Assembly (NCBI GenBank): GCA_024704765.1
Contig: JAKMXF010000365.1
Location: 62,001 to 126,000 of the forward strand
Length of the DNA stretch: 64,000 bases
Direction of reading: 5' to 3'
DNA from: Oopsacas minuta
Lineage: Eukaryota > Animalia > Porifera
Each line of letters starts with the position of its first letter. The stretch's first letter is position 1. Position numbers and translations under genes: made by a program. The notes below the pieces were generated by a model. It did not search any database and had not been told where the DNA came from. It saw only the letters and a program-made list of their open reading frames with translations. Below, one piece after another: positions 1,458 through 38,100 of this stretch.

Positions 1458-1799
1458 ATGGTGTCAGAGTCCTCAATGGCTGAAAATTATTCAAATATTG
1501 TGCCAAATTCCAAATATCCATTTTATTCAGAGGAACAAATTCATGATCTCCCATTCAAGGATCTCATAGCTGGACTCAGGTCCCTAGCAACCGTGGAAGA
1601 GATCGGAATGATTAAAAATATTCGTAAAATCAACAAAAAGAAATTATGGAAAAGAAACAGAGACAAAAATGAGAAATTCGAGGTTATAGATTTGGAGGCA
1701 ATTTTGGAAATTCTTAGAATTGAGAAAAATACTCTAATTTGTTTCCGAACTTGTTTATTAAAAGAGATAAGTGAACTCCAATCCCTAATTAATAGTTAG
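1458..1799 (+). CDS. Small divergent CNC/Maf-like bZIP protein (113 aa, intronless)
   Basis: PFYSEEQIHDLP..IKNIRK..K.....VIDLEAILEILRIEKNTL aligns by eye with the CNC (Nrf2-type) segment PFSVEKIINLP..IRDIRRRGKNK..IVELEQDLDHLKDEKEKL; leucine heptads follow. Confidence 0.6.
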   Translation: MVSESSMAENYSNIVPNSKYPFYSEEQIHDLPFKDLIAGLRSLATVEEIGMIKNIRKINKKKLWKRNRDKNEKFEVIDLEAILEILRIEKNTLICFRTCLLKEISELQSLINS

Positions 1800-1800
1800 T

Positions 1801-1866
<66 letters not shown>
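1801..1866. repeat. (TTG)n microsatellite
   Basis: About 21 perfect TTG units just after the bZIP stop codon. Confidence 0.95.
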
Positions 1867-1869
<3 letters not shown>

Positions 1870-2043
1870 CACATGCTTCACACATATCATGCATCCATCG
1901 CTCTATTTGTTTACCACACGTAATGTAATTAACACTTCATTGTTGTCACCAACAATATTAATATTTGTATCAGCTATTATTCTTGCATATTTTTGTTTAC
2001 TTGAATGTTTGTTGTTTATTGACATAAATTAGCAAATTAAGAA

Positions 2044-2869
2044 ATGCCATTCGGGAAAAAGAAAAAAGCTCCAGCTGGTTAGTTATGTGTTACAACCAAT
2101 AATTTTGAGAGTTTTGTTTACTTAAATAGAAGTGTCTTGTTGTTGTTTATTAAATTTAACAATATTTTGCACCCTTGGGGAGGTAAACAAACAGGAGAGA
2201 GGGGTACAAGTGGATTAATTATAACACCTATCTGAGTGTCAATTAGAGTATAATATTTATTTCTTAATATTATAATGTTTACGCGCGTATTATCATGTTT
2301 ATTTGTTGTTTACTTGTTGTTGTTACCAGGGGGATCCAGTTATCCAAAACAAGCCTCCTATCCAACACAAGCCCCTCTGTACCCACAACAAGCAGAGGTA
2401 CACATGTTACAATAAATATTCATTTGTCATTTATTATTATTATTATTAGGCGCCACCTCCATATCTGCCCCCAGGACAGTACCCCCCTCCCCCTACTCAA
2501 CAGTATGCACCCCAAGCCCCTGGTTACCCGGCAAGCTATCAGGTATGTATAGCATAATATCTATAATTAGTAACAATTATTATTTAATTATATATAGCCT
2601 CCTGTACCTGTTGGACAGTTTGAGGCAGGAGCCAGATTCAAACCAGGAGAGAGTGTATCTGTTCCTGTAAGTTAAAATAAAATTTATCAATAATTCCCGC
2701 CTAATATTTGGTGATTAATTGATCCTCTATTTAGCCCCCTCCCCCAGGGGTAGCTCCTACTATGGTCCAGATGCAAGCAGCTCAAGGAGTACCTGTCCAA
2801 GTCCAGCAGAAGAGCAGTAACTTGTTCAGTGGAGGAGGCGATGGGGGCATAAACTTTGAACTCAATTGA
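2044..2869 (+). CDS. DAZAP2: DAZ-associated protein 2 homolog (5 exons, Pro-rich)
   Basis: Spliced product includes APPPY, FEAGARF, PPPPGVAP, QAAQGVPVQVQQKSSNLFSGGGDGG, matching the DAZAP2 C-terminus (YDAGARF..PPPPG..QG.NV.VTQRKGNFFMGGSDGG). GT-AG introns. Confidence 0.85.
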
Positions 2870-3073
2870 GACCCCTTTCTGAAAATTTTATTATTTGATT
2901 GTTGTTTTTGTTTTGTTAGGCTCTAATTGGATAATTGGTTCCTATATTTATTATTACTCATTACTCTATGAATGTTTTATTTGTATTTGAAACGTTCATA
3001 ATTATCACCTCCAGCCTTTATACACACATTCTAACACCTTATTCCTTTATATGATACCAAAAAGGTTAATCCT

Positions 3074-3372
3074 CTCGCACTAATATTCTATTTCCCGCAC
3101 TAATATTCTATTTCTCGCACTAATATTCTATTTCTCGCACTAATATTCTATTACCCGCACTAATATTCTATTACCCGCACTAATATTCTATTTCCCGCAC
3201 TAATATTCTATTTCTCGCACTAATATTCTATTTCTCGCACTAATATTCTATTTCTCGCACTAATATTCTATTTCCCGCACTAATATTCTATTTCCCGCAC
3301 TAATATTCTATTTCTCGCACTAATATTCTATTTCTCGCACTAATATTCTATTTCCCGCACTAATATTCTATT
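3074..3372. repeat. 20-bp minisatellite, 15 copies
   Basis: Unit CGCACTAATATTCTATTTC[T/C] in tandem, between the 3' ends of DAZAP2 and the sorting nexin. Confidence 0.95.
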
Positions 3373-3534
3373 TTCTGCAAAATTGATAATTAATTATTTG
3401 TCATAGAATTGTTTACAAATGAAAATAACATATTTGTTGTAATAAATGAAAGAAAAACAGAATTCACACAAAAATAAATGAGGGACTATTGAGCTATTTA
3501 TACGTGTCTGTGTGTGAGAGGTGCATTTCATTGG

Positions 3535-6500
3535 TCAGGTAGCCTCCTGCTCTTCATATATAAATTCTATAGACCTATTTCCTATCTCTATGGGACTTTC
3601 CAGTAAAAGTTTCATAGCATACCATTTGCTCTGTTGCTAGGGAAAGTATAAAGTATGTGATTAGCTATTTATCAATTTCAAAGATTTAGTAAATACTGCA
3701 AAATTTGGCAGGTAGGTGTCAAGTGGCATAGCTTATCTCTGAGGAGAGGTGACGAAATGTATTGATTAATCATATTTGAGAATATACCAGTATATGTTAT
3801 AAAAAGGTGTTACTTTATATATATATAAATTTCTAATTACCTTTTGCATTAGCTCATGTTGTGTATTAACAAAATCAATAAGAATATTCTTCAAATCTTT
3901 TTCCTTCAAATAATCAAAATGTATTAATTCCTCAGCTAAATTGTTACACATATTCTCGAGCTCTTCTCTAGCACTCCTGCATTGACTGTTTGCCTGTAAA
4001 CAATGATTGAAAAGTGTCACAAAAGTGGCATAGTTTGTCAGATTAAAATAGTACACCGAGGTGCAAATCTACAGGTCACAATGAACCCTCGGAAAATTTT
4101 CAGCTCTTAATCATAAACGGTGTGGACTGTACAGGGAACACGGAAAATTATGGACCATGGATAACAAGTTATAACAAATTCCCTGATCTCTACTATCCAT
4201 GGTCCATTAGTATGTATATTACCTCTGCCCATTTTTGGCTTAAGCTAGAATTAGCATAAGCTACAGAAGGGGATTGTACTCCGTTATTAGAGCTGGCCCC
4301 AGACTCAGACAATCCTGAGTCATCAAACACACTCAGGTCCTCATTAGAGTCTGTGAGACTATAACAAATAGGTGTAGTATCTCCATGGTTACTGGGTGTG
4401 TAACTGGAATGTTGGTAGTTGGCATTTTCACAGTTTTGTACTTCTTCTTCCCAGAATAGATATTTATCCATACTCTGCTCTATCCTCTCTAATAAACCCT
4501 AGATACAACATCTATAATATCATAGTATATATGTATACATTAATTGTCTTCAGGGGATCATCTGGTACCCCAAGGATCACATATGTACCTATGGGTTCGC
4601 TGGATTAATCATATGAATATATAGGTGTTAATACTATACCTTAGCTGAAGTTATATATTGTATAGTGCTTTGTAGATTTTGTACAAAAGTCCAATCTTCG
4701 ATACTATCCTCTCCCTACAAGATGACGTCATATCCATTACAGAGGTGTCAAAATATTAATATCTAGAATTTCATTACCTCTTGGTTATTCATAGATTTGA
4801 ATATTTTAGAAATATCTTTAATCACAACCTATAATACGAATTCATTGGTCAATTCATATCCACACTTAAATATGTATATTTTGTCACCTTAGTGTATGTG
4901 TCTCTAGGCTCGTTAGCACTCACAGCCTCCAGCCACTTCCCAGCGCCACCTGTATGTGTATGTAAATAGAATACAATAGCAGCTGTTAGTAGTATAAATT
5001 TACCATAATTGAGTTTACGTATTTCTTGGAAGTGATTGAGTAATCCTAACAGATTTCCTTCTAAGCTCTGTAAATAATTCTACAAAAAATATGAATAATC
5101 ACTCTGAGGTGTTATTCATCTTGTTAAATGGGGAGAGGGGTACCTTAGTGTCCGCTAGAGAGGTCTCCTGATCCCCTGCTCGGGTCTGGGGTCTGTACTC
5201 CGGAGGAGTAGAGATCAGTTCTGATCGGCTCTGTCGATAAGAAATTCTTGATAGCCTTATTTTCTAAATTATTAATTTATATAACCAGCAGCTGATTGAA
5301 AGGTGTGAAAATGTTAGCTTTGGGCCATGGGTACCTCAGGGGGACATGTCTACACCCCTAAAGTACCCATGGCCCAAATTTCAGGTCAATCGGACATATT
5401 TATAAGTGTGAATTAATCATATGATGAATACCTCATTAGATCCGAACAGAAATGTGTATAATACAGGATGTGTCCTGAGATTCTAAAAATACATATTAAT
5501 AATTACTATAATATCTATTTATAGTAACATACTTACAATATGAGATGAGAGTCTGTTTAAGAACCTCTGGAATTCTGTTATTGTCTCTACAAATAATTAT
5601 ATACATAACAATAATCAGCTGTTTATTGTTATTAATATGAACTAACCGTATAATGATATATGATGTTGTAGAGGTGGAATTATTCGTTCTGGACAAACAG
5701 CCTATTAATACACATTCCTCAAGGTAACCATGGTAATCATTAAAAATGTAATAACCTGTATAGCAGAGTGTAACCAGTAGAAGTCTCCATGAGACCTGTA
5801 TACTTCTACACAGCTGTGTTTATTATCTGATAACTTCATCTGTAAATATTAAAGAAATTGTAAGAGGTAGGAATTTGAATTTTGGCAGATAAGTGTCAAA
5901 TAGTGTAACTTATAACTGATACAAATATCTAATCGGGACCTTTTAAATTGAGTAAGATAGGTGATGAAACGTATTGACCTATCATATTCCATGGGTAACA
6001 AATACGTAGTGGTTTATATACACATGTTAACACCAATCTGAGCCTGTAACCTGATTGGTCATGAGTTATACACATACCTTGGTTATGACTTTGAATGGAG
6101 CGGTCTCACCAGATAGAGGATTAGATCTTGTTAGTGTTATAGCAAGGGAGTTATCCTGACGGGTAATATCCTCTATCCTACAAATATATACGTGCTAATT
6201 ATTGTAACTATGAATTCTGGAGGTTAAAGGTCCCCTACCCCCCCCCCCTCTCTTATGATCCCCTATACCTCTGTGTCTATATTAGTATAGGTATTATTAT
6301 TATTGTTGTTGTTATTGACACTTATTTTAATTTATTTACCATTTAGAAATGTCTGCCTCTTTTATTGGAGAAGATGTTGAGCATCTCTTAGAATGACTAT
6401 CCATATTTTCAAATCTAACAACAAATATATCATCAAACAAACAAACAAATAAACAAACAAACAAACAAATGAACAAATGAACAAACAAATAAACAAACAA

Positions 6501-17300: not shown

Positions 17301-20300
17301 TTCGGACAGGCTTTTATTGGTCTGTTACTCCCCCCTATTCGTGTTTGGTGGAAATGGTTAGTATTCGCTATACAGCTGAGCATAACTATTTTCGGTATTA
17401 TTCTGTTTTTGTACTTTTTCGCAACTGCTTTCCTAGAAGCTAATATTTTCTATCTATCCGTGAAACGTAATGTGTCCTCTCTGGGTACAAATGAGGCCCT
17501 CTTGGCTCTCTATTACGAGGGTCTAGCTATCGATTACTCAAGGGCTGTTGTGGAATGGATGATATTCGTTGAGGTGATTGTATTTTTTTTAACTCTTATT
17601 CCTGATTTCCATCGCATCAGAGTTAATCTACAAATTACTCGTCCTTATGACCAAGGAGGTGTGAATACTATTGACAACGAGATGAAGAAAGTTTGAATTG
17701 TTGTTTGTTATTGTTTACTTCTAATTATCTTTAGTATAAGTTTGTTTGTAAACAAGTATAATCATATTATCTAATCAAATTCAATATCTTTTTGTTTGTT
17801 TGTTTATTAAAGAACTGACAAGAGTTACAGATTTGAAATTTGGTAAAAGTATAGAATATGATATAAATATAAATAATATCAAAGAGAAATGTCGAAAACT
17901 CTCTGAGATAGGTGACAAAATATCTATTCATATGGTTCTGTACCTGGTTAAGTAACCGGATTAATCAGTGGCTCTATTAAACAGAGTCTGCTATATTCTT
18001 AACACCTTCAGAGGTTGTTAATTAAATCAGAATATGTACGTACACATGGCATATATCACAGAAATGAGGTGTGATGTAATTAAAATTAAATAGGCTTCAT
18101 CAGAATAATTATTTATACTATTTTGACTGATACATGTTTACAATCGAATCTGCTTAATCGGGTCGAATGGCCTCAGTTCCTGTAACCATATATGAATAGA
18201 TATTTTGTCACCTATCTCAGAGAGTTTTCGACATTTCTCTTTGATATTATTTATATTTATATCATATTCTATACTTTTACCAAATTTCAAATCTGTAACT
18301 CTTGTCAGTTCTTTAATAAACAAACAAACAAAAAGATATTGAATTTGATTAGATAATATGATTATACTTGTTTACAAACAAACTTATACTAAAGATAATT
18401 AGAAGTAAACAATAACAAACAACAATTCAAACTTTCTTCATCTCGTTGTCAATAGTATTCACACCTCCTTGGTCATAAGGACGAGTAATTTGTAGATTAA
18501 CTCTGATGCGATGGAAATCAGGAATAAGAGTCAAAAAAAATACAATCACCTCAACGAATATCATCCATTGCACAACAGCCCTTGAGTAATCGATAGCTAG
18601 ACCCTCGTAATAGAGAGCCAAGAGGGTCTCATTTGTACCCAGAGAGGACACATTACGTCCCACGGATAGATAGAAAATATTAGCTTCAAAGAAAGAGGCT
18701 GCGAAATAGTAGAAAAACAGAATAATACCGAAAATAGTTATGCTCAGCTGTATAGCGAATACTAACCATTTCCACCAAACACGAATAGGGGGGAGTAACA
18801 GACCAATAAAAGCCTGTCCGAACGAATACACATAATTCAAGAAAATGGTTAGAATAGCTGAAGCAAAGTGAAGACGATTCGACAGACTTGAATCATCGAA
18901 TTCGAATGCTGCGACAGACAGAAGGAAGAATATCGCCATAATTCCTATTACAAGGAAAATGTAGTTACATACTTTAAAGCAGACACCTTCAGTATGAATA
19001 TGAACATCTTTGAAACGAATATAAATTGTAAGTAATGCAAATAACGAAGTGATAGCGAATACCAGAACAAAGAATCCATTCTCTATAGGATACGCCCCCG
19101 TGTCACTGATATAGGGGAACACGGGTCTAAAGTGATCCTGTGATACCCCAATGGTGTATGTCAACAAGTTCCCTAATGCGAATACTCCACTTAATAAGAG
19201 GATAACCGTCCAAGCTGGAATATAGTACATCTTAGTTGAGTTATGTTTGTTAAGAAATTCAAAGTATTTATAGAATATATAAGACTATTTATTGAAGTGT
19301 GAAAGTAACAAAAGGTCTTTAATTAGGTTCCTGGTTTTACAGCTATGGTATTTTGTGTAATATACATAGCTGTTAGTTTCAAATTATGGTTCCAATAGCA
19401 TATAATGTTGAATACTATACTTCATGTGATTATATAGACCCACAGATAAATGGGATATCACATACCTTAGTTACCAGATGCTGACTGAAATATTCATCTT
19501 ATATAACCTATATGAATATCAAATAGATTATAATCCTATATTCACACCTAATTATAAATGGCTTCAGTACACATATCTAGTGTTGAGGACACAAACGATG
19601 AGGCTACCTCTTGTAAGAAACTGGCCAATGACTTAGGGTACTTCACAGACCCATTCCTCAAATATTTCTGTAAAGAGTGTCCCAAGCGGTCCCCAGAAAT
19701 TAACCGTGGTTATTATGCTAGATACATTGGAATGCAGGAATGTGTAGATAAATTTATCGGAAAAACTATTGGTCGATCACCACAGATTGTTAATCTAGGC
19801 GCGGGGTTTGACACATTGTTTTGGCGCCTAGCTAGTTGCTATGACAACGAAGATATGCCTGTGGTATTCGAGGTTGATTTACATACAGTGACGTCACGAA
19901 AATGTTTACATATCAAAACGAAGAAGCATCTAATCTCATTGGTTGAAAAGTTTGGTAAGGCAAGCATTGCAAAAGGAGAATTGCATTCTGACAAATATCA
20001 CCTTATCTCATGTGATATACAAAACACCTCTAAAATGGAACTAAGATTAATTAGTTCCGGTTTAGATAAGGATAAGCCTATTCTCTTCTTATGTGAGTGT
20101 TTGTTAGTGTATATTCCATGCATATTTGTACAGGAATTGGTAACCTGGGTAGCTCATAACTTTCACACTTCCCAATTTGTGTCATATGGTCCCGTCAATT
20201 TATCCGACACCTTCGGGGAGGTTATGGAGAACAATTTGAAGAGATCAAGGTGTGATCTATTGGGAGCAGATTTATGCAAGAGTCTAGACACACAACTTGA

Positions 20301-23300
20301 TCTAATAAAGCCATTCCAGAAGAGAGGTGTCGTTACTATGGACAATGTATACAGGAATGTGCAAGATAAGGAGAGGAGAAGAATTGAGAAGATTGAACTC
20401 ATGGATGAGATAGAACCCTTCTATCAACTCCTGTCACATTATTGTGTCACTATAGGTGTTAATGACACCTCTTCTATAGGATTAAGCACTGTATTATGAT
20501 TATTATTCACACGTTATGATTAATCATATTATAACATGTATCAACAAGGAACCTGGACAATTAGGCAATCAGAACTGTTTATCATATACCATCTTGTTTA
20601 CCCAATAAATACAAACAAACAAATATTGTGCAATAATAATATTCACTAATACAATGAATCATAACCTTTAGTATACGTGTTATAATATTGAACTATCTAA
20701 CAACTTTCCTTCGGGTGTACACACCGTTAATAGTGTCACATCTAGGACAATAGTGCTCCACATCCATCATACCACTTATACACAGAGGTATAAGAGATAG
20801 AGGGAGACACAGGACAGGGAAGAGTAGGAGTACGGACATGATTCCTATCACCAGGGCGATAATCCAGCAGTAGAGATAGTTCTGAGACCCCAACCGTTTA
20901 CGCGTATAAGTTACCTACAAATATCCATACAGTAGACCGGTTAATCGGGTTAGAGGCTAGTTTGACCCGATTAACCGGTGACTCTATAAAGCAGATAGAT
21001 ACATTCTATATAGTCAGTAGCGTAACTAGGGAGAAGGAGCTCTTACCTGGTCTGTTTTACATTTGAAACATCTGATTGTTTGAGGATTAGGTCCTCTTAT
21101 ATCTGGAACTGGAACTTCATCAAAAACTGAAGATCTCACATCTTGTAACTACAAGATATAACCATGGATAACATAATTATCTAGCTGTCCCAAACCTGGG
21201 TCCACAGGATCTCACAATTTGTATTACAGTCTATGGGAAACCCTGCAATAATCTATACTTGCTATCCCTGGTCCATACAATACAATAACTTACATTAACT
21301 TCGGAATCAGCATCCACCAGAGGATCCAAGTCTTGATAGAGCTTATGAGTTGGAGTATTCTCCATCGTAGGTCTCTGCATCATAAGAGGAGGAGAATCTG
21401 GGTTTTGTCCCCCATGAAACAACGCTCCGGGCCCCTGACTCCCTTGGAAGGCCTGCTTGACAGCCGGATGGTGTGCTAGATAGGATGGGACCGGATCGTT
21501 GTACACAGGACTTATTTCATTCTGATCTGAGTACATTTGTAGAATTGTTAAAACTCATTTTAGGGTCTCTGATTTGTATTTATACTTTACCGGAGTGCAT
21601 ACTGATAAACCCTCGAATCTTATTGGTTGAGAACTCACGAATTTCGCGGGAATTTACAATTTTATTAATTTCTTATTTTATGGAATTTATTAAATTCTAT
21701 TTTTAGAAATATTATATTTAATTATACAATTATTGAAGGGTGTAAAATTGGATTTTTTGCTCTCCTGGATGGTGCTTATATATTGTACCCCTATTGGATA
21801 AAACATTAAATATTATTATGACGTATTTGACACCTATAACTAAATGACAATATGAATATTTTCGGGGTAGAACCTAGGAAGGAGTTTAGCATCTAATAAG
21901 TAAACAATAACAATAATAAATAGGTAACAAAAGTTTGTCAACAAAAATCTAAAGTAGAATTCATAAACAATTATATAACAGTCACTATGCCACTCTAGAC
22001 ACACCATTCAGGTGGTTGCAGTTAGGACACACATGAGCTGTGTCCATCAATCCTGGAATACACAAGGCGACAAATGCGAATGGCAGGAAAAAGATTGGGA
22101 ACAGGAATATTCCAGAAAGGATCAAAATAACAACAGCTGTAATGCCACACACTATCCAATTCATTGCTCCTATTCTCTTAGTTGTCCTCGTCACCTATAA
22201 ACATACTTTATATCACATTTTCACACCTAATGGAATAGTAATAATATCAAAAAGAGACCCTACCCCTAGGTGCAAGGATAGTCTCATTGGTCGACACATT
22301 ACATTGAAATAATATGGTACCAAATTGACCCATTCGGGGACCCTCCTCTACTTATAATCGTTACATAACAACCGATATACACAATAGGTATTTACCTGTT
22401 CAGTCCTGCAGTTGACACAATTTATCTTCTGAGGAACAGACCCGAATGAGGACACAACAGTTACTACCTTGACAGGTTGAGATTGAGTAGGTGGGGCTTG
22501 TGGTGTCGTATATTGAGCCTACAGTAATTGAGTTAGCATAACACCTAGATGACACATTTTGTGCCGCTAATAATGTGACATAACTTATTGTATAATGACA
22601 CAAAGTTGTCGCTAAGTGGATACCGGTTATAAGGAATACATATTCTAATAACCGGTTTCCACGGGATGGTACTATCCGGTATCTACTGTAATTACCTGTG
22701 GGTACTGTTGAGGAGGGTACCCCTGCTGGGGAGGTGGGTACGGTTGTTGGTACCCCTGTTGGGGGGCAGGAGGATACCCCTGGGCATACCCCTGAGGAGG
22801 GGGAGCATACCCCTGTGCGGGGGGAGCATACCCCTGTGCAGGGGGATTTGGATACATTGGATTTACTGGGGGAGGTGCTCCCACTTTAGTTGGCTCATAG
22901 GGTGGTGGTGGTCCTTGCATAGCTAATATTAGTAAATACAAATTGATATATATATATATTGTCCGTTAGGTGTGAATATGATTATAGAATGTCGGGACCG
23001 AAACCAGAAGACGCGCCCAATAGTCACAAACCAATTGTCTAGAATATAAATATCAAATATCCACACCTCTATGAGAAAAGGTGACAAAACACCACCCAAT
23101 CAGATTTAAGGGTTACTAATAATTTCCTTATCCAAGGCACTATACATGGTAAATTCCTTCATGACACACTGGTTGTCAAGAAGAAGGTCTATTAGGAGAG
23201 GAGAGGAGAGGAGAGGAGAGGAGGGCATTAAAATCTAGGATTATAGATATTTATACTACTTATTGAATGAGCCTATTAGTATAGTATTACACTCTATGGC

Positions 23301-26300
23301 TATGTTATCACTTTCAAAACCTTTAATGTTTTGCGATGGTAATTAGGATATTGTAGTCCTTCATTAGATACCCTCCCTCCCTAAAGGGTGTAGCCAAATA
23401 CCAACAAGGTAACCATGGAAACTGGGACATAACACGTCACAGAAGCCTGTTAGGGGAGTTTATGAATATATTCTTGTATAGAATGCTATGATTCATGGTA
23501 TGTAGTATGTGATTATATGTTATGTCCCCTGTCCAAAGGTGCATTGGTGCCTGTCTCCATGGGACACATCGCCTTCCTTAGGTGTCATATTACTTAATTA
23601 TAAGCACACTTTATTTAACTCACAAAACAAGATAAATAATAAATAGAAATAATAAGCTAATAAAAATAGAAAAAGCTAACACAATAATGATGTGACCTGT
23701 ATAGCTGTCACGTGTTTGTTGATGTTTACAGCTGTTTGTGCACACCGTTAACATGGTTACAGTTAGGGCAAATATGTTCCACATCCTTCAAACCAGGAAT
23801 ACACAAGGCAATGAATGCGAGGGGGATGAGACAGAATGGGATCAATAACTCAGGTCCCAAAATGCATAACACTAATGCAATTATAGCACAGACAAGCCAA
23901 TTCATCGTTCCTACCTTCCTTCTTATTACTGTTGCCTAGAAACGAGTAAAATATGTAAATACTGATATATTATAAGGTGTGAAATCTGGTGAAGGGGACT
24001 CAATAGAGCAATTGGTCTTGAGCCATTGTTAGCGATATTTAACCATATATCACCCTGTATTACATATCCCTACGGTTACCTTGGTTACGTATTACATATG
24101 TGTTCAGGAACTATTCCTCTAATTGGTTCTTTCCTGGATTTTCACGATTTTCTGTAATTTCCATTTTTAAAGTGTAAATAATTTGAATTTTTATTGTTAA
24201 AAATAAATAACAAATCACTGTCTGTCTATGCTTACATTTTACTAAATTCATTTTTGTGGATTATTGAAACTATTTTATTCTACTAATTATCCATTTTAAC
24301 AAAGAGAGGTGTGAACTGCAGAGCGAAAACATTATAATACTATTAATAGCATTAGTTAACACATATTTACCTGCTCGGTTTTGCAGTTTGTGCAACAAAT
24401 TCGCTGAGAAGTATTTCCAAAGTGGGTAGTAATTACCACGTTAGTCACCGCCGGTTGCTGCTGGACAGGGGCTCCCTAAATAACAAATTATGGTGAACAC
24501 ATATTATTAGCTGATTAAAACCGCCAAAACTTACAGGTTGAGGATACGGTTGGGGTACCTGGGCAGGAGGGTATGGTTGTTGTTGAGGGGCACCAGGGGG
24601 ATAGGGCTGTTGTTGAGGGGCACCAGGGGGATAGGGCTGTTGTTGAGGGACACCAGGGGGATAGGGCTGTTGTTGGGGGGCACCAGAGGGATAGGGCTGT
24701 TGGACAGGTGCCGGTGGGTACTGCTCTGCTGGAGTATATTGTGGTGGATTTTCTCCTTGCATATTTTCTTACCTAAAAACGGATAATTTGTTAACCTAGA
24801 TACATGAAAATATGATAATCGCCTCCGATTAGTAGCGACACCTTCAAGGGCACCAAATGTACCCCTAGCAGACCCCCCTGGGTCCAATGTGTCCCTATTT
24901 AGCGGAGTCAACTGTAAGAAAATAACCTTTTAAGAGGAGTTTTCTTTTCTTGAATGAATATTATATCTAATAATTGTGATATTCCACTATTTAAAGAATA
25001 CAAATGCCTAACATTTATCGTATGCTAATTGGAATTAAGCTACGTATGCTATTTCTAGAGGTGGAATATTGGTCGAATACACTCTATACAGTTATAATTG
25101 ATTACTAGTGTTCACACTGCACTATTTTGGCTACAAGTGCATATTTATTGGATACATATGTGGGGCGAGTGTTAACCATGGAAACTGGGACATAGCTTTT
25201 CTTTCAAAGCCGCAGAATAATTCATTGTATGTAGTATTATGTCCTCTGTCCAAGGGTGTTAGAAATTCATCAATGCCCAACTACAATTCGGGGTAAATGG
25301 CATGTTTTTGTGATAAATTTTTTTGAATAAAGTGATATAAAGGCCTATAAATCCTATTTATCCTATTTATACTTCACGAAACGACTAGAGGGATCTCTCA
25401 ACCAATCAGATATCAGTCTATCTCTTCTTCATTCCATTAAGATAGTTGCAATTAGGACACCTGTGTTCTATATCCTTCAGTGACGTAATACATAAGCAAA
25501 TACATGCGAACGGAAAGAGTATTGGTCCAACTCCTAGTAGGCACATAATTAGGATGGTAACCAAGCATATTAGCCAACTTTTTGATCCAACTTTGTATTT
25601 CAGTCTTGTTATCTAAATACAATCATTTAATTATTGAGGAAATGGGATGAGGTACACACTTCAAATTTGGCATGTAGGTGTGAAGTGGTGTAAATATGGA
25701 CATGTATAAATTTCAAAATTAAATCTTGACATTACTCGGAGAAAAGGTGACAAAATGTACTCGCCCAATCAGATTATAGAGGTTACTACTAATGTTATTA
25801 ATTGATAATACAGTAATTTGATTGGTTACCTGTTCCGTATCGCAATTGATACAAGTGATATGAACTGGAACTGTGTCAAATACTGTCACCTTAGTAACCA
25901 TTTTGACTGGTTGTGTCTGTACCGGCTGTTGCATCTAAACGGATAATTATCTTCTTAACAACCATATTTTACTAAGGAATGCGAATAAAAGCATGTAACA
26001 ACGAATTTACTTGTATCACTACTGGAGGAGGTTGTTGTTGTACATAATATCCAGGCGGTTGTTGTTGTTGTTGCTGTTGTTGTTGTTGTTGTTGTTGCTG
26101 TTGTTGTTGTTGTTGATATTGTGGGATTTGTGACTGATAGTCAGGGGCATATGATGAAGGAGGTGGAGGATCACTAAAATCAGTCATAAAATATCCTAAT
26201 CAGATTACAATGGAATGTGTAAGGTAACACCTATAACTACAAACAGAACTATTAGTATTTATCAGCAAATTTCTTGTTTACCTTGAATGTTTGTCTGTTT

Positions 26301-29300
26301 ATTTTGGTTTCATAAGAAATGTGTACAGTATAACAATACCAACATCATTATTTGTAAACAAGACAATAATTAATCATATGGATTTTGTAAATAGTCATAT
26401 TGTGAGTGAACAATTGTATCAGTCTGTGAAGCCATGTTTTATAGTTCTAGTTTAAATTGGAACTATTGAATATTTATATTTATTGTTTGTTAAAATCGTG
26501 GCTCGAATCACACATATAATTACAAATATTAGAAATTTATGCGCGGAATTTATCTGGCGCTGCTATAATATTATAATTGCAACCAAAAATATTCTTATTA
26601 TAGGCGCTAAATATGCAGAATATGGCGCCAGATTTGTGATTTACGCGCCAATAATATATTGGCGCTCAATCCTTTGTCTTCACCTCCAATTTAATTAAGG
26701 AATTTTATTTTTTGTCATATATATGAAAGACAAAACAACAATCTATTAATAGTAAACTAATACGATTAAATTATCGCCTTTTTCACTCCATTTACAAAGC
26801 CACAATTCGGACACACATGGCGCTTGTCCTTTGTGAAGTCCACAAGTAGAACGCACAACACACATGGCAAACACAACAGGAGTCCAAATATGAGGAAAAC
26901 ATATGCCACAATCGCCACTATAATCCATGAGCCAAGTCCAATTTTCGGGTCTACCCTTGTTAACACTTCTTTCTGGCAGTTGGTACATATGATCCTCTCG
27001 GGGACATCACTCCATTTCTTGGGGCCAGGGAGCGTCTGGACACATACCACTGGGGGTCCTGGCGCTGGGACTGGTGGACTGTCATAAGGAGGCGGAAGCT
27101 CTTTTGTGGTTATCAGGGGTTCAAGTTGGGCTGGAGGGTAAGATTGCATTCCGATAGTTCCTTATGGAACATGTTAGAAATTATAATAATAGAATTGATT
27201 TCTAAAATTGTGGTTGAATAGAAATAACATATTTGATGGTTGCATTTTAGAAATTGTGACCACTTGGGTATCGATCCCTTACCGGCGCCCCTTGTGCCAG
27301 AGCTGCAAATGGGTCACATGAAGTGACCCATGACCCATGTGACCCATCGAAGTAGTGACCCATGACCCATTGACCCATGGGTCATGACCCATTTATTATT
27401 TTCTGACCCATTCTGACCCATTCTGACCCATTATGTATTTCATTATTAGGAACAAGTATAATGTAAGTATTTAGTCTAACACAATAATTAAATTGTTTAT
27501 ATATCCTCCCAACACAACAGAGACAGCTTCGATAGTTTCTGGCAACATTGCATTCCGTTGAGATGTTACGATATGCCGAGCATTAAAGGCACTAAAGTGT
27601 CTCTCGCTTTCGGATGAGGATGCCTGAATTACCAATAGTCTCATGGCAATTATTGATAATAATGGAAACCTAAGTTTATTCTGCTTCCACAGATCAAGGA
27701 GATTAAAACTCTTACTTGTAGTATTCCAAACATTTAGTATAATGACCACCTCTATTAACTCTATTTAGAAGGTTTTCTAATTGACAAATAACTCTTTTAA
27801 GCCGACATTGTATATAAATACAATTTTGATGGGTCATGACCCATTAACGCATGACCCATGACCCACTGACCCATCTGACCCATTGACCCATTTGCAGCTC
27901 TGCCTTGTGCCACTTTGTGCTTAATTAAAACATTTTCAAATGTGGCTGTTTTTATATTACAACCAATCAATCATGCAGATAAACAACGTATAACTAATCT
28001 AAACATGTAAACAAATATGCATCAATGGAATGCCTTCTTGACACCGTTAACGAAGCCACAATTCGGACACACGTGCTGCTTGTCTTTCGTAAAGTCCAGG
28101 AGTAGAGCAATTAAGGCAAACGGGACACAAAAGATGAGGCCAAACGCGAGGAGTATCCATGCCACAATTCCCACTGCCACCCACGAACCTAGTCCCACTT
28201 TACTCTCAATTCTTGTCAGGACTTCTTGCTGGCAGTTGACACATTTTATCCTCTCAGAGATCTCACCCCATCTCTTGGGTCCAGTCTGGACACAGACAGG
28301 GGGTGCATCATATGATGGTGGCGCCTCTTTTGTTGCTATGAGGGGATCCTTTTGGACTGGTGGGTATTCCATTCGGTTAGCTATGTTGCTAGCAAATATT
28401 TACTTAACTATGAATTTAATAGTAGAATTATTATCTACTAGTATGGGTGTATTTTAATATTTCAAGATAATACATATAATTAGACGCGTTGCTATAACAA
28501 CAATACAAGAATGTACCTCTCATTTTTACCGGTTTGTGTTTGCCCCCATGAGGGGTAACTTAAGGACCCCTGATTAGTGGCCATTAAGGCTGAATCGAAC
28601 CCTGTTCCCCAAGTCTCTAACGTTATAACAGTCCAAAATTAGTATGATAAATGCACTTCTTGTAAAATGAACTGAAGAGCGGATATTTTGAAGATTTTCT
28701 GAGAATATTTGATAAATTAGAATAAAATAAATTCCTAATTAGGTTATGAATTAATTTTTACCTAAAACTACTGAATTATTGAATTTTATTCATTTTCGCC
28801 ATTTTTGCCTAATTCATTGAAAGGATTCCTTTTATCTTTTCCCATTCAAATGAAAGAAATCCTACCAATGAAATTCTCACTTATATGATATGAAGTCAAT
28901 TTTTGGCGCGTTTGCCCGCAATTACTTTAGTATAAATTGAGAATTTAATAGAATTCAACCACCAATCAGATTCTGTACTTTTCCATAACAGCATGTCATC
29001 TGTACCAACTATTCAAACACAGGAAACATTCTTGGAAAACAGATTGATACATTCCGATACCGATTTTTGGTTGCTAGGCGACGTAGAAGGGCCAGATGAT
29101 GTATTTGAAGATGACCCCTTCGAAAACGGACGAATATTTTTCAGAGTTGATGTACCTATGAGATTCGATTATTTTGCAAAAGAAAAATCTTTCTGGGAAT
29201 CGAGTCAGAGTTATTTCTGGGATTTTATCGGTTATATTTGGCAGAATAAACTTTCCTCAAAAAACACGTGAAAGATATTTTATTTACTTCTTGTTATACA

Positions 29301-31517
29301 CTTTTCCATCAATTTTGACACATTACATAATTTGCAATTATAACACTTTAAAATAGAAAATAATTACTAGAACTATGTCGTATCTTTATCATATGTTGCT
29401 ATCAGTTTACATACCAAAGATGCACCATGAACGTCATTTTCAATAACTGAAACTAGCTAAAGGATGTTGATAGTTCTTTCAATATAACTGAAACTAGCTA
29501 AAGGATGTTGATAGTTTTTTCAATATAACTGAAACTAGCTAAAGGATGTTGATAGTTCTTTCAATAAGTAATCAAATTGATCATAGTTATCCAGAAGATT
29601 CATTATGGAGGGGGGAATTGTAGTAAAATCATAAATTGAAACAAACCAACTTTCTAAGAATGTTTTTATCATATTACTATATGTGAATAGCTGTTAAGAC
29701 TATACAATTAATATCAGAGGATTCTAATTTTAGATATACGATGATTAGGGAAAACTTTGGTATAAATATTATGAAAATATACTTTTGAGTATCAAATAAT
29801 TATTTCTAACATGAATTCCAGAATCCAATCAACTAAACCTCGGCCACATTCCATGCTGTCATTCTCGTCGCTAAGAGGGATAGATGGACCAGATGACGTA
29901 TTTGAGGATTATATTGAGGACACCCAATCATACTTCAGAGTTGATGTGCCACCTGCAACTGATTATACAAAAAATGACCAATCAATATGGGAAGTTACAA
30001 GCACATATTTTTGTAGTTTTCTAGACTCTCTTTGGTGAACTTCACATTCCTAGTAACAATCCTGTTGTTATGTAATTTTTAATTTTATTCTGATAAATAT
30101 ACATTACAATTGCGTTATATTTTTTATAATATTTTAATTCCCGCTCGCGCCCGAAATATCGATTATTGCTATTGCGCGCCTAAAGTTATCTAATTATCCC
30201 GCCAACAAGATCCAATCAAATTCACGCTTTAGAAGTATGCATTGTCTGGAGTTGCATACAGTCAATTCCTGTTATATCTAAGCTCAAGGGACCGCGATAA
30301 TTACTTGGATATAACCGATGGAATGTATGGACTTTGACGGTTTGGGACCATATTTGTACAATTTCACACTTCGATATATCTGAGTTCTATTAACGTGTGA
30401 TGACTGCATATAATTGTGAGGTATTTATGGCTTTCAAAATGTGACAAAACTCAAGATTTACAAGTACTTAAATCCATAGTACCATAGTTAATTATGCCCA
30501 AAAGTTATCTGTACTCTCCTATGGAAAATTCCGTGTTTATCTATTTATAAGACTATCTTGCAAGCCATTTAATAATAATAACAACAAACATAATGAATAC
30601 CAACAGTCAAGCAACCAATCAATTTCCAGAGTTAATCTTGTGGTGTTTGTATTATCACCTCACTTTTCCAAATTTTCCGCTTAAATAATCCTTGCGGCAT
30701 TTTACAGCTGGGACATCTGTGTTTCACATCTTTCCATCTCTTAACAACCAATGGAATTATAGCTAGCGGTAACAGTAAGATTCCGGCGCCTAAAGTGAGA
30801 AGAGTTAATAGGCCTATAATTATTAAAATTATTACACACGAACTTAGTGAGGCCTTCCCGTTGATATAAATTATTTCTGAGATAACTTCGATTTTACACT
30901 CACGACACCTGAATTTTAGAGGGCTAGGGGTCCAGAAGTCCTTCTCCTCTTCCTCCCAAATGGACCAACGTCCCATAGGGGTTGTACTCATGACCTCATG
31001 TGAGGTGTTAAGCGTCACAGGGCTTATGATAACCATTGTGTCACGGTGTAATTTTGGTATCCGCAAATGTTGAGGACGATTTGGTTTAGAATTCATAATT
31101 TTAAATGTGAAATTATTTATTCTGTATTTATAGAAATTACCCGCCACTTTTATGGGGTTTAACAAACGATCTTTTGACGTTTTTCACACAAATTTGCTGA
31201 TTCTTGTATTTTTATGCCTCGTGAAACCTTTAAAACAGTGTCGAATACTCCGCCATTTCTAATTATGTATTTTACGCGGTGAATCTCCAATAAATGAACA
31301 GTAATTGTGATTGAATTTGTTTGTTAATTAGTTTATACTGCAATTCTAATAATAGTAACATTATTTACAGACTTATTTTTTAGTTGTTTACAGAATATTT
31401 ATGCTATAAATATGACTGATATATTCTTGTAAACATTCAATTTTCATTTTATCTAACTTATTTATCTTATTTAATATAGCCAAAATTATTACATTACTTT
31501 TAAGTCAAATTTCATCC

Positions 31518-31567
<50 letters not shown>

Positions 31568-32110
31568 GGTGCATTTTAATTATACGAGACAAACGCTTCT
31601 GTAATTGAGTTGTTTTGAGAAAATTAGCAACTGGATCCAATTTGGTTCCGTATGTAATTGATCCAATTAATTATCATGAGTTGTAATATAATATCATAAC
31701 AGTAAGGTAAACACACCCATAGGGACATCCTCATATTTGATATTTGATTTATTCTATTGAAGAACTGGTAAGAGCTATAAACTTGTAATTGGGGGAGTTC
31801 ATGGAATATGATATATCTAGGAAACTAGCCAAATATTTAAGTGATATTCTAACACCTTTCTGAGATATACAACTAAGTGTCTCGACCAATCAGATTTAGG
31901 TGTTTACCCGGGGTTATATTCTAACTGTTTAATTCTCAACAAAATCAATAATAAACAACAAATAAACAAATAATTAAATTTCCAAACAAGTTTGAATATT
32001 CTATAAATAGTTTTGTGGCTATTTATAGAATTCAGAGAGAGATTCAGCACAATGACTGTCAGCAGTGATTAGCCAATAGAATGGCAACCTTCTGTCGACC
32101 ACTTCCAAGG

Positions 32111-32157
<47 letters not shown>

Positions 32158-35100
32158 AACCATGTGATCACGTGACTATTGGGCTATTGGACCATTGGAC
32201 CATGGGGCAGGGCCCCAAATATTTGAAGACCCAACTTTTCTAACTTTAAGCTAAATAAGAGCAATTTAACATAAAAGTTTAGTGTCAAATCGGATTTGAC
32301 AATTTTAACACCTAATTGTCATATTTCATAAATTAAAATAGATCTGGCGACCATTTGGGTGTTTGTTTTAGTGGCGGGCATCGCAGAGGGCAGAGGGACA
32401 ACTACCTCAGATAATAATGGTTCCTATAACGATAAAACTACACCTTTCAATCAAACTTGAAAGAGAAAATAGAATATTCAAATATTTCTACTTTAAATAT
32501 ATTAACTATATGCCTACTAACAATAGATTTTAAGCGGGAAATATTATGAATAGCATTCCTAATGACTCCTATTGTTGCTATGAATAAAATATTTTTTAAT
32601 ATTCATAACAGATATAGTTCAATCATGTACTTTACAAATCTGTAAATTGCTTATACCCACACCTGTTGCTATGATTTAATTCACAAATCTGTAGTATTAT
32701 TACTTCATCTTATGCAGGTTTACTGATGTGAACTTACAACATTTATGGGGGCAAGGGAGGGAGTCTATCCAATAAACAAGGAAACTGCAGCAGTGTATTG
32801 AAATATGAGATTATTATTAAATTATATTCATTTGAGTAGCCGCGCCAACTGGTGTATATTTAATTAGGAAATATTTGAGTGGTATTTTTAGCGTATGACT
32901 TGCCTGTACCCCCAGAGGGGTCGGATGGATAATGGATAATGGATTTGTATCCATCCTACACTTCTGCCTGTTGTGCCTAATAATCTTATTGGTCCAGGAC
33001 AACCAATGAGATTTGTCGCTACGATTAGGCATATAACTTCTACGTAATACATATACAATATATTTACTAATTTTTATATCATAAATCAGTGCGTATAGAA
33101 AGTGTCAAGTCAAATAAGATATGTTCTAATCACACGAAGCAAGATTCATATCGTAAAATTATTGAATATTCAAATTCGGGTGACACAGCTAAACACAAAC
33201 ACTTTTCCACACCTCACAGTGAAATATATAGTTAATATATTTCCACGTGTTAATTAGATTAGATGATGATGGATATATTTTTAAGCGGGGAATAGATAAT
33301 TAGGCGCTAAATTACTCATAAAGAATTCATAATTTAGCGCGATTAATTATCTATTTCCCCGCTTAAAAATATATCCATCATCATCTAATCTAATTAATAA
33401 TACTTAACACCTAATTTCAAATGCTGGGAGCTAATTAATTATTGATTAGAAATTATCTTAGTTTTTGTTGTAATGAACTTTCGGTTTGAATTACAAATAA
33501 TATTCAACGAATAACAACAGCCACCTCTGCACACCTGTTCTTTTAATGACAATAATCTATTCATTAGTATTGAATAGGAACTAACCATCACAGATAGTAC
33601 CGATTTAATTTATAGTCACAGCTATTGCTAACGTCCATCAGCTAAAAATATATATATAATGCTGGATACTGTATGAATTAAAATAAATTCAGTGAAATGA
33701 AGTCTTTTCAAAATATGTTACCAACACTTTTAGAAGCAAGCGAGCCAGGCCTCGGAGAATTTGATAGGCGAGCTAGCACATCGGCGCCCGAATTGGACAG
33801 ACAGAACTCTCCTGCTTCAAATTATAACCCGCCAAATTATGCGCCACCTGGATTTAGGTCCAATGTCCCTGAAAGGCGACAGAGCTTCGCGGAACCGCCG
33901 GCTTATAAGCCACCTTGTGAAACGCTCCTTCGTAAACGAGCAATGAGTTCGCCTCTTTTCCCTTCCAAATTCAGTCGTGAGGAACCTGACACACACGAAA
34001 CACCTTCCCCCACTATTCTGACACCTCAAGTATTCGGTAAAGAGCCACAAGTTGCATTTTGTGCCACTTGTGAGAGACAACAATTGTCTGTCACTAAAAA
34101 AAAAATAGGCAAAGCTTCAAAATTCACTTTTGGAGTGGTAGCTGCCACTGTCGCTGTCATTTTCGCCCCAGCAACCCCTCTGACATTAGGAATTCTCCTA
34201 AATTCAAATCTGAAAGATACTGTGCACAAATGTCCCAGCTGTAGAGAGCGAATGGGCAAACATAGACAACCAGTTTTCTAAATATAGCACCTATTCCTAA
34301 CTTTTTATTTATGTGAAAATATTTTGATATTTATCAGTCGTCCACAATTAATAAATTTAATTGAATTTACTATTTCTATATTATACTTTCATCTATTTGG
34401 CGCGTAATAAAGGACAATATTTTGGCGCCTATAATTTGTATTAGATAACCCCCCATTTCTAAATTCACGCGCCTAGAATCAAAACACGTAGCTGGCTCAT
34501 TAATGTCAACACCAGGAGGTAGTGACACATGTCCCCAATATGACACTATAAACTGGAACTATACAATTACGTTTCACCTATAGTTCCATATTATTATCTT
34601 TATTAGAACTATCTACACCTGCCATATTCTAAAGTCATTATTCTCCTCACTTCGGTAAAGATATTATAATATAATTAGAATTCCAATCAATTGTTTACAT
34701 AAACCACTTTTGCTTATTTGACTGCCACCAGAGACTATGCTGCCACGTAGAATAGGTGTTAGCTAGTTTCATTATAGCACTTTCATTGATCTAAAATTAG
34801 CATCAAACGATCATTGAACGCACGCTTACGTTTGCGATCTATTTTTGATTATCGAAGGATGATCGGCGATCATTTGATCACATTAGGCACACAGAATTCG
34901 AACATTTGCTAATCTAGTCCCCAAAATGTATGACTGATTTAATGGCTATTATACTGGTAGATTTCTTATCAGTAATGTGTCGACATATACTATGGATAAT
35001 AAGGATATCTACATTCCATAGAATGGTTGCATAGCAACATAAAACTATGCATACTGATATGTTGTTATCTTTCCAAATTTCATTTATTGATTGTAATTAG

Positions 35101-38100
35101 TAAACAAACATTAAACGCTCTAAATACACAAACAAATAATCAAAATTAATCCATTTGTTTCTTAGTTCCATTAATATATCCACAATTTGTACAAATATGA
35201 TTAACATCTTTGAAAGTGTCCATGAAAAGTGCTCCAATCCCACAAGGTACACAAATCCAACAGAAACACAGACACAAACATATAATACAAACAGCAGTCA
35301 TTACCCAATTCAAGTTACCGACCTTCAATTCTGTTTGTGAGATCTAAAAATAGAATAATGATAAACGGATTGTTGGTCACACGGAATGATAAGATACTCT
35401 GCCCCATTGGGAAGTGTCCCTTAACCTCATACGGCCTCAGAAAGGTGTGAAAATATTCATATACGTATATACACACTTACCCCAGCGACTTTACAATTCA
35501 CACAGATAAATTCCTGTGGTAGTTTTCCCCATTCAACATCAGTATTATAATTATAACTCAAACCATTTGATATAATACTACCCCGGGACCTCCCGTTGTT
35601 ACCCAAGGGCTCTTTGGAATGTACCGTATTTGGTTCCATATTTGTTTTTGTTGTTGTTTGTTCAGGTGTTGTTTGTGTAGAATTGTTTTCTGGCATTTTG
35701 TAGAAATCTCAAGCTATATGCAAAACACTCTGCCTATTATAATTAACGTAAAGCTGGCATCTTATTGGTCAATAATCCGCCACGTGTGACCTTTATTGAA
35801 CTCTTTACGCTGATTGGTCATAATATCACGTTATATTTGGTAATGTGTAATTTGAACTAATTATCCATTTATTGTACAATTGGAATTATGTTGATAAAAT
35901 GGCGCTCAATTTATATGTATATGCAGCTGGTATTGCGAACAACCGCGACGATAATTATTTATGAAATGTAGGTGTCAAAATTTATTTATTGTTAAGAATT
36001 CAATTGTATTAAAATCTCATGAAAACTTCTATAAACTTTCCAACCAATGAATTTACAGTTTCAGATAGGCATTATGAACTAATAGAATACCAGACAACTG
36101 AGTAAGCCCTCTAATCTGATAGGTTAAGACATTTGTGAACATACTATAAATACAAATGACGATAATTATCAGCTGTTTTAAAATTAATATGAAAACATTT
36201 CGAGAGACTATATATTTAATCTAACCAATCAGAATCCGTAGTTTAGGCGCCATAATGTGCTCACTATTAAGATTCCTAATTTTGGTAATAAATTCTGTCC
36301 AAAAATTCTTGTAAAATTTAATTAAAAATGGAATTGTCAGGAATGTCCCATTTTCGGATATATTTTAGTGTCATATCCATCGACACAAGTTTCCCACTTT
36401 ATGACAGGTCAGACCGCCACAAAATACGTGTCCCACTATTTGCACCATCAGTTCGGAATTCATAAATCATTTCAATCTAGGTATTTATAGATGAACTTGA
36501 TGCCGTGGGTGGAGCACGGATTGCTACAGATATCCACCCATATGCTCGCATGACACTTAATCAATTGTTAGTAGAGCTAGATGGATACAAGGAAAACGAG
36601 GAAGTTATTGTGATAGGCGCAACTAATTTCCCAGAGTCTTTGGACAAGGCCTTGGTGCGACCAGGGAGATTTGATCTTAAAATTAACGTACCGATGCCAG
36701 ACCTTAAAGCTAGACATGATATCTTAAAGTTATATCTTGACAAGGTGTGTTAACAATCTGTCCCGACACCTTTGTCTATTAAATTTGTTTAATTGGAGGT
36801 ACAATGCATATACCTCCATAGTGCCTCCAATTACTTTTTACTGTACGGGCTATTCATAGGTAAAATGTGATCCAAACTTGGACATAGAACCTCTTGCACG
36901 GAGCACGCTTGGTCTGACGGGGGCGGACCTAGCGAACTTAGTCAATCAGGCTGCTATACAGGGGAGCGTTAGGGGTGCAGAATTTGTTACCCAGGGGGAC
37001 CTAGAGATGGCGGAGGATAAAATTAGGATGGGACCAGAGAGGAGAAGTTTGGAGCTGAGAGAGAAAAACAAGGAGGTGATCGCCTACCACGAGGCTGGAC
37101 ATGCCCTCGTGTCTTTATACACTGAAGGTGAGAATTGGCCCTTTTTTCCTCCCGATGGTTCCTTCATAAGTATTTGAACGCACTGCCATAATTTCCACAT
37201 GACACTAATATGCATGCCACATTAGTTGTTTAGAATTTGAGTCTATACAAGTAATTCATCAAAAGACATTTCTTGCAATATTTAACTATTCTGGGCGCGT
37301 GCCACTTGTGCCACATGTGGTATGGTGTGCAATACCTTTGGCCAGTATCAATGACCTTCTGGGTCAATTACAATATTTCAGGGGTACACTCTTGCACCAT
37401 AATCCTCCCCTAAATCACTTGTCCCAACTCCTCACCACTGTTTACGATCCATTTTCAGGTTCAATGGAGATTCGTAAAGCTACCATTATACCCCGGGGAG
37501 GAGCACTGGGGATGGTCTCCTTCTTCCCAGAACGCGACGAGCTAGGCTACACTAAGAAACAAATGTTGGCACAACTTGATGTCGCTATGGGTGGCAGGGC
37601 AGCTGAACAAATTATATTTGGAGACAAGGAGGTTACGGCTGGGGCTAGTAGTGATATGAAGGGAGCTACTGGATTGGCTATGTCAATGGTTGCTCATTTT
37701 GGAATGAGTGAAAAGGTAATTAATATTTTGTAAACACATAAACAAACAAACAAACTAGTAATATATTTGTAGACCGTAGTTCTCATTATATGACACACTA
37801 ACTAATCTCCCGTTTGGAGTTATAGCTATCCCTTGGGGGTTATATAACATTCCTTGTTGGTATCCCTCTGTTCCTACCGTGTGTAGGAAACTGCCTTCTG
37901 GAGAGAATACCCGAATTGAGTGAGAGTCTTCATCGCTAATAACAAAGTTGTTAAGTGGATCTATACAGAAGAAGATAGGGCCTAACACATCCATTCCTTG
38001 TCCACAGGTAATGAGGGAATGTAGCTTGTCTCCTTCTAGGGTTAGCACGTGCATACAGGGGTTGTTAGATGGACACAGTACGTACACGCGGTCACGTGAC

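Follow-up and report, generated by a model that had tools for sequence, protein, structure and literature searches.

A conserved tandem array of nine LITAF-family genes in the sponge Oopsacas minuta and its probable role in endomembrane sorting

Results

Identification of nine clustered LITAF-domain genes

The stretch of DNA analyzed here (hereafter the window) comprises 64,000 nucleotides of the forward strand of contig JAKMXF010000365.1 from the glass sponge Oopsacas minuta (positions 62,001 to 126,000; GenBank assembly GCA_024704765.1), and coordinates are given within it unless another contig is named. Between positions 20693 and 35696, the window carries nine intact genes of the zf-LITAF-like family (PF10601), designated g1 to g9, eight of which are encoded on the minus strand and one (g8) on the plus strand. 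A stop-to-stop reading of the region from 20000 to 36500 revealed these nine places, each with a CxxC, a hydrophobic stretch and, at the C-terminal side, an HxCxxC knuckle. All genes scored above the Pfam gathering cut-off of 23.8 bits (29.4–58.8 bits in hmmscan, run on the last exon of the five spliced genes), and a six-frame scan of the entire assembly (61,460,524 bases, 365 contigs, about 36% GC) returned the same nine places with scores of 28.6–59.3 bits. This bears out the first-pass annotation, made from the sequence letters, which had reported nine LITAF-core genes in this arrangement and whose end coordinates of the array agree with its outermost coding bases. The genome scan yielded 16 matches altogether, and finding nine of them inside 15 kb of a 61.46-Mb assembly indicates that the clustering is not a matter of chance. 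The other copies are three genes on contig C298, a tandem pair on C303, a single gene on C66, and a pseudogene on C333. The highest score in the genome (81.7 bits) belongs to a single-exon gene of 118 amino acids on C298, which an NCBI protein labeled LITAF-like matches at 100% identity; the one named close relative recovered for this copy comes from the glass sponge Vazella pourtalesii (83% identity). The pseudogene (L005, 3015-3317, minus strand) is a copy of the LITAF-domain gene on C66 with one in-frame TGA within the hydrophobic segment.

Every array gene encodes an N-terminal CxxC, a hydrophobic stretch and a C-terminal HxCxxC, with 51–58 residues from knuckle to knuckle. The knuckle positions are invariant across an alignment of 28 sponge sequences, in which a conserved Gly and Pro and a K-D-x-x-H motif also align. 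The copies are diversified, as the first-pass annotation had held: the LITAF domains of the paralogs share a median identity of 35% (range 26–65%), their N-terminal tails a median of 18%, and at the DNA level similarity is found only in coding parts (62–73%). Identities that low rule out recent copying and assembly duplication as the source of the array.

The predicted proteins are 116–194 amino acids long, and all frames are open with both knuckles intact. Genes g5, g6, g7, and g8 consist of a single exon, g1–g4 have three coding exons each, and g9 has two, all modeled junctions being of the GT-AG type. A phase-0 intron placed a few codons past the first CxxC is common to g1–g4 and g9 and is found in two of the C298 genes as well; in g1–g4, it comes after the codons for (T/K)(D/E)Q. 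Homolog searches were run with single exons or single-exon genes, and the joined models of g1–g4 and g9 served for alignment, tree building and estimates of selection.

The minus-strand gene g1 (20696..21536; exons 21536-21294, 21148-21047, and 20914-20696) encodes 188 amino acids with a Pfam E-value of 2.8e-8 for the last exon; its tail lacks the PPxY motif, and the junction between exons 1 and 2 is a prediction, picked by GTAAGT/AG and an open frame. The next gene on that strand, g2 (21988..22920; exons 22920-22696, 22518-22396, and 22194-21988; E-value 2.7e-8), encodes 185 amino acids, including a Pro-, Gln- and Tyr-rich tail with PPPY at residue 5. It is followed by g3 (23729..24762, minus strand; exons 24762-24535, 24475-24371, and 23935-23729; 180 amino acids; E-value 9e-7), which has PPQY at residue 6 and a tail built of 30-nucleotide repeats encoding 10 residues (repeat family D3), and by g4 (25421..26187, minus strand; exons 26187-26011, 25934-25830, and 25612-25421; 158 amino acids; E-value 6e-8), which has PPGY at residue 44 and a polyglutamine run. 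Length variants of coding repeats were noted at 26006-26160 and 24472-24536; in the polyglutamine tract of g4, two DNA-like sequencing runs (see below) carry a 3-nucleotide deletion and a TTC insertion. The single-exon genes g5 (26769..27149, minus strand; 127 amino acids; PPPY at residue 19; E-value 6e-16 for the full domain) and g6 (28025..28372, minus strand; 116 amino acids; PPSY at residue 18; E-value 5.8e-16) come next. Gene g7 (30635..31096, minus strand; 154 amino acids; E-value 9.8e-11), whose start codon was set by agreement with its orthologs, has a conserved basic and acidic tail that lacks PPxY. The plus-strand gene g8 (33697..34278; E-value 5.6e-10) encodes 194 amino acids with two such motifs, PPNY at residue 45 and PPAY at residue 67. 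The array ends with g9 (35149..35696, minus strand; exons 35696-35481 and 35343-35149; 137 amino acids; E-value 6.5e-8), which has no PPxY and reads HICTNC at its second knuckle; its junction is likewise predicted, picked by GTAAGT/AG at the intron place shared by the family.

Transcription and splicing of g1–g4

Four public sequencing runs from one sample, the type of which is unrecorded, were placed on positions 20650-26649 of the window (6,000 letters covering g1–g4). Three of them covered exons and spacers evenly and contained no joints, i.e., they behaved like DNA. In the remaining run (X4), by contrast, word depth reached 10^3 to 10^5 on exons versus tens to hundreds in spacers, and its contigs left out the predicted introns precisely, the ends of the gaps reading CT..AC, or GT..AG when read on the minus strand. 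The stretches left out were 20915-21046 in g1, 22195-22395 and 22519-22695 in g2, 23936-24370 (435 nucleotides) and 24476-24534 (59 nucleotides) in g3, and 25613-25829 in g4, and none of these six joints was present in the DNA-like runs, all three of which come from this sample too. X4 was thus taken to be RNA, and the exon-restricted depth together with the GT-AG joints indicates that g1–g4 are transcribed and spliced as modeled. The highest X4 word depth in the covered region falls on g2, though contig depth cannot rank genes by expression. The first-pass annotation had allowed that most copies might prove unexpressed or neutrally decaying; none of the nine is decaying, and the four genes open to this analysis, g1–g4, are transcribed and spliced.

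Conservation of the array in related sponges

Contigs of three relatives were retrieved from ENA assemblies by exact-protein look-up and are referred to as species B (ERZ25071281; L001 and L007), species C (ERZ25069837; L009 and L018), and species D (ERZ20067936; L011), the last of which was covered in the g7–FtsH half only. In O. minuta, the gene order is DRAM, LCMT1, g1, g2, g3, g4, g5, g6, two small genes, g7, g8, g9, and an FtsH-type protease. In species B, DRAM and LCMT1 are again followed by g1 and g2; next come three copies resembling g3, with a ZBED/hAT-type transposon in their midst, then a gene with NHL repeats, a single g6-like copy and one small gene, and finally g7, g8, and g9 ahead of the FtsH-type protease. 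In species C, which has the same flanks, g1 and g2 are followed by four g3-like copies, a single g6-like one and two small genes, and these by g7, g8, and g9, and the more distant species D reads g7, g8, g9, and the FtsH-type protease. LCMT1 and the protease therefore enclose nine LITAF genes in species B and 10 in species C, and g1, g2, g6, g7, g8, and g9 are one-to-one and collinear among O. minuta, species B and species C. Orthologs of g1 were present in species B and C, and those of g7 and g9 in species B, C, and D; the species B ortholog of g2 is 71% identical, g6 is 70% identical to its species B and C orthologs, and g8 has five orthologs at 56–73% identity. The domain intron of g9 in species B apparently begins with GC (GCGAGT) rather than GT (L001, 3393-3475). 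An additional contig of 8.9 kb (L008, from ERZ26869290) gave the initial impression of four LITAF genes in alternation with small genes. It was not counted, since the copies are mirror-inverted and identical to one another, and the mirrored g6-like gene and small gene look like a fold-back artifact of assembly.

Maximum likelihood applied to 28 domain sequences (83 columns) gave a tree, unrooted and built without human or demosponge outgroups, that recovered the orthologous pairs with good support (89/85 for g2, 100/100 for both g7 and g8, and 100/97 for g9). That g7 falls within g1 in this tree is a long-branch effect. Genes g5 and g6 grouped with the single g6-like gene of species B (98/96), and the split between them is younger than that between O. 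minuta and species B (93/77) and was seen only in O. minuta. At least seven paralog lineages (g1, g2, g3, g5/6, g7, g8, and g9) are thus older than the species splits. The first-pass annotation had also left room for such arrays being the ordinary ancestral state, which applies in part: the array is ancestral for these sponges, and expansions of LITAF genes are known in animals (PMC5142333, PMC3308963).

Selective constraint on the array and turnover of the g3/g4 group

Nonsynonymous (dN) and synonymous (dS) divergence was estimated by the Nei–Gojobori method. Between O. minuta and species B, dS is saturated (>1.1 or undefined), and the dN of the LITAF genes amounts to 0.18–0.27, compared with 0.18 for the neighboring LCMT1 and 0.30 for DRAM; judged by these values, the protein divergence of the LITAF genes is on par with that of their housekeeping neighbors. 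Between species B and C, where dS is 0.5–0.9, the dN/dS measured across the array genes ranged from 0.07 to 0.17 (g6, 0.10; g7, 0.07; g8, 0.08; g9, 0.07; g3 group, 0.12–0.17), and neither elevated ratios nor positive selection were found in this comparison. Orthologous tails are 56–74% identical, and the tail of g8 is conserved as well as its domain. The lineages thus appear to have been held under strong purifying selection since the glass-sponge species diverged.

A different picture was obtained for young copies of the g3 group, which comprises three co-orthologs in species B, four in species C, and g3 together with g4 in O. minuta. There is no counterpart of g4 in species B or C, and with a long terminal branch (1.08) and 49% identity to g3, it is a fast-evolving, O. 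minuta-specific offshoot of this group. The dS between g3-group copies is 0.03–0.16 inside species B or C versus 0.7–1.2 between species, which indicates that the copies arose, or were homogenized, separately in each species. The ratio of nonsynonymous to synonymous codon changes is 42:20 among the young copies compared with 42:57 between species (Fisher p = 0.002, the pairs not being fully independent), and the dN/dS of young copies is 0.4–1.3, based on as few as 10–24 differences per pair. Most of the changes in species C are located in the part that runs from the first knuckle to the anchor's end. This pattern would fit relaxed constraint after duplication and is not proof of positive selection. 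Rapid birth and death of copies is absent outside the g3 group and the O. minuta g5/g6 split in O. minuta, species B and species C, and the g3/g4 subfamily alone is still duplicating and changing, mainly in its membrane-anchor segment.

Predicted structure, tail motifs and candidate ligase partners

An AlphaFold model was prepared for g8, using an input alignment of 23 single-exon family members. It predicts three strands (residues 119-122, 127-130, and 132-136), a hydrophobic hairpin of two helices (139-155 and 157-167) and two further strands (174-178 and 185-189), preceded by a disordered N-terminal tail of about 110–121 residues; the predicted local distance difference test score (pLDDT) is 81–90 for the domain and 45–63 for the tail. 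This layout agrees with the description of human LITAF based on nuclear magnetic resonance (PMC5142333). A sequence search found no solved LITAF structure. When the g8 tail alone was compared with 1.84 billion representative proteins, it matched a single cluster, that of its own orthologs, and at least this tail is thus private to the group.

PPxY motifs occur in six of the nine proteins (g2, g3, g4, g5, g6, and, twice, g8), and the P(S/T)AP motif, which binds TSG101 of the endosomal sorting complex ESCRT-I, is found in none. Of the link to NEDD4 ligases and ESCRT mentioned in the first-pass annotation, the ligase half therefore has a counterpart at the level of motifs and the ESCRT half has none. 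As to possible partners, WW matches in the genome number at least 22, and HECT genes are numerous. The five best-scoring HECT genes (an RCC1-HECT, a HECW-like, and three others) have no WW domain, which had suggested a sponge without NEDD4-type ligases. That idea was overturned by a laxer scan, which found a multi-exon gene (G000:C88, about 649.9–654.2 kb, minus strand) with WW exons beside HECT exons, the WW domains being split by introns; the WW-HECT partner class thus exists in this genome. We also noted a HECT ligase encoded by one exon and about 1,160 amino acids long (L014, G000:C321:68000-72000; open reading frame 229-3711, minus strand) that has a HECW_N domain; neither a WW nor a C2 domain was detectable in it, in contrast to HECW1/2 of other animals.

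Discussion

The one-to-one collinear lineages, the low dN/dS and the neighbor-like dN point to a set of old, subfunctionalized genes and not to an arms-race family. We consider it probable that the nine genes are functional members of the LITAF/CDIP1 family, arranged in an old and conserved tandem array, and serve as subfunctionalized endomembrane adaptors. Each protein would consist of a disordered N-terminal tail and a C-terminal LITAF domain, i.e., a zinc ribbon (CxxC ... HxCxxC) interrupted by a hydrophobic hairpin of helices. Through this hairpin, human LITAF is anchored in a single leaflet of the membrane of endosomes or lysosomes (PMC5142333). By analogy with the family, the array proteins may be monotopic on an internal membrane, with the tail exposed as a docking site. 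The six PPxY-containing tails could recruit HECT ubiquitin ligases with WW domains, and the recruited ligase would then mark and sort membrane cargo. As each copy has its own conserved tail, labor may be divided among the copies, which would serve different partners, cargoes or compartments.

Several points weigh against this proposal. Its statements on zinc binding and membrane topology, on location, on recruitment of ligases and on divided labor are inferences. Judged by their motifs, g1, g7, and g9 lack PPxY and no array protein has P(S/T)AP, so docking of ligases or ESCRT cannot, as it stands, cover all nine. The evidence for transcription spans four of the nine genes (g1–g4). The assignment of species B, C, and D to the glass sponges rests on similarity and is thus presumptive. 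Finally, the deep nodes of the tree are weak and the array is not a supported clade with respect to the other genomic copies; for this reason, the tree supports neither an origin of the nine genes in place from one ancestor nor any one copy as the ortholog of vertebrate LITAF or CDIP1, the copy nearest to the PF10601 consensus sitting outside the array, on C298.

The first-pass annotation had taken clustering and diversification as a sign of an immune- or stress-related repertoire, in which the copies would have diversified against microbes, lipopolysaccharide (LPS) or membrane damage and would be induced by challenge. This explanation draws on the LPS-inducible LITAF transcripts of vertebrates and bivalves and their large number in a filter-feeding mussel (PMC3308963), as well as on the g3/g4 group itself, which was duplicated independently in three species and whose young copies show the excess of nonsynonymous changes described above, mostly in the membrane-anchor segment. 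However, a relaxed ratio is expected in young duplicates without any immune role, tails are conserved between orthologs, and seven lineages are kept one-to-one and in order with a dN/dS of 0.07–0.16 and a dN like that of their neighbors. The step from a clustered and diversified set to immunity therefore finds no support in the evolutionary pattern, apart from the modest turnover of the g3 group, and we regard such a repertoire as unlikely. The same long-term orthology and strong purifying selection, seen in all lineages, oppose an arms race in which the proteins would act as toxin receptors or decoys and the extra copies as escape variants or decoys. LITAF and CDIP1 are reported to be host receptors of a pore-forming toxin of Bacillus cereus (PMC13524335), and young g3 copies vary chiefly in the membrane segment. 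Nevertheless, the proteins show no evident variable region exposed at the surface, and in the published topology (PMC5142333) the family faces the cytosol, which makes this scenario very improbable.

That the array consists of redundant or decaying duplicates, or results from an error of assembly, is hardly conceivable: all nine frames are open, the knuckles are intact, g1–g4 are spliced in RNA-like data, the paralogs are just 26–65% identical, and orthologous arrays exist in three other assemblies. What could be cited in its favor are the hAT fragment located between g5 and g6 and the copy on C333, which is a genuine pseudogene. An array of conserved sorting adaptors is therefore the reading that we prefer. 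A narrower version of it would be a glass-sponge endomembrane sorting module, composed of a fixed LITAF core with private conserved tails, the two small genes located between g6 and g7, and a duplicating g3/g4 group that varies the membrane anchor. This is a long shot, but if true, the module could be tuned to syncytial tissue or to contact with microbes.

Humans have two genes of this family, LITAF (also known as SIMPLE) and CDIP1, which are dispersed. The sponge proteins resemble them in the CxxC, the hydrophobic in-plane anchor and the HxCxxC, in the three strands that precede the anchor and the two that follow it, and in the disordered Pro-rich tail ahead of a C-terminal LITAF domain, with PPxY in six of the nine genes. 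They differ in that the nine copies are clustered, their hydrophobic segments are longer and variable in length, three of them lack PPxY and none has the P(S/T)AP of human LITAF, which is a trait of the human protein and not of the Pfam family. PPxY adaptors of NEDD4-type ligases with which the array proteins may be compared are Ndfip1/2 and the arrestin-related trafficking adaptors, small membrane-associated proteins whose PPxY motifs bring WW-HECT ligases to cargo and whose families, differing in their tails, split cargo among members; their folds and anchors are unrelated to LITAF. LITAF domains have undergone multiple large lineage-specific expansions in animals with the tail-plus-domain layout kept (Ho et al. 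2016, PMC5142333), and a Mytilus edulis transcriptome contains 24 LITAF-domain fragments (PMC3308963). The sponge set resembles these expansions in the number of paralogs per lineage and in its layout and, unlike them, is resolved as one physical array with documented age, synteny, introns and constraint. Our literature search found no direct report on LITAF in sponges or on tandem LITAF arrays, and the paper describing the O. minuta genome (PMC10280926) does not mention LITAF.

The locus may offer a clean, dated case of a small adaptor family expanding and dividing labor in an early-branching animal, with seven long-fixed lineages beside one subfamily that is still turning over. It also cautions against reading the combination of “LITAF” and “tandem array” as immunity, since the evolutionary pattern argues for a housekeeping role in membrane traffic. 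The analysis also supplies curated gene models, including several with splicing that simple calling of open reading frames misses. The practical value of the finding is modest and lies in natural tail variants for testing recruitment by a LITAF anchor and in a marker locus for comparison of glass-sponge genomes.

Other features of the locus

Two small genes, at 28993-29268 (plus strand, 92 amino acids) and 29811-30035 (plus strand, 75 amino acids), lie between g6 and g7, head-to-head with g6. They are not LITAF genes and gave no Pfam match, and they have GPDDVFE, YFRVDVP and an aromatic C terminus in common. Genes at the same position and in the same orientation are present in species B (L007, 19512-19769) and species C (L009, 5563-5820 and 6866-7123), with a dN/dS of 0.15 between these species. 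The two small genes are separated by a 41-nucleotide unit repeated three times in tandem (29443-29566, 98–100% identical).

The hAT transposase fragment between the young duplicates g5 and g6 (27474..27749, minus strand; PF05699, E-value 5.5e-16) corresponds to the C-terminal dimerization region. A seemingly intact ZBED/hAT-type transposase lies amid the triplicated g3 genes of species B (L007, 11228-13014), and both lineage-specific duplications therefore adjoin elements of the hAT family. At 23233-23540 (spacer between g2 and g3) and 21199-21238 (first intron of g1), word depth in the DNA-like runs rises to between 4 and >100 times the local level, and contigs are interrupted; these two segments are probably high-copy dispersed repeats. 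Furthermore, a perfect inverted repeat of 43 nucleotides (33250-33292 and 33355-33397, with a 62-nucleotide loop) is located about 300 nucleotides upstream of the start codon of g8.

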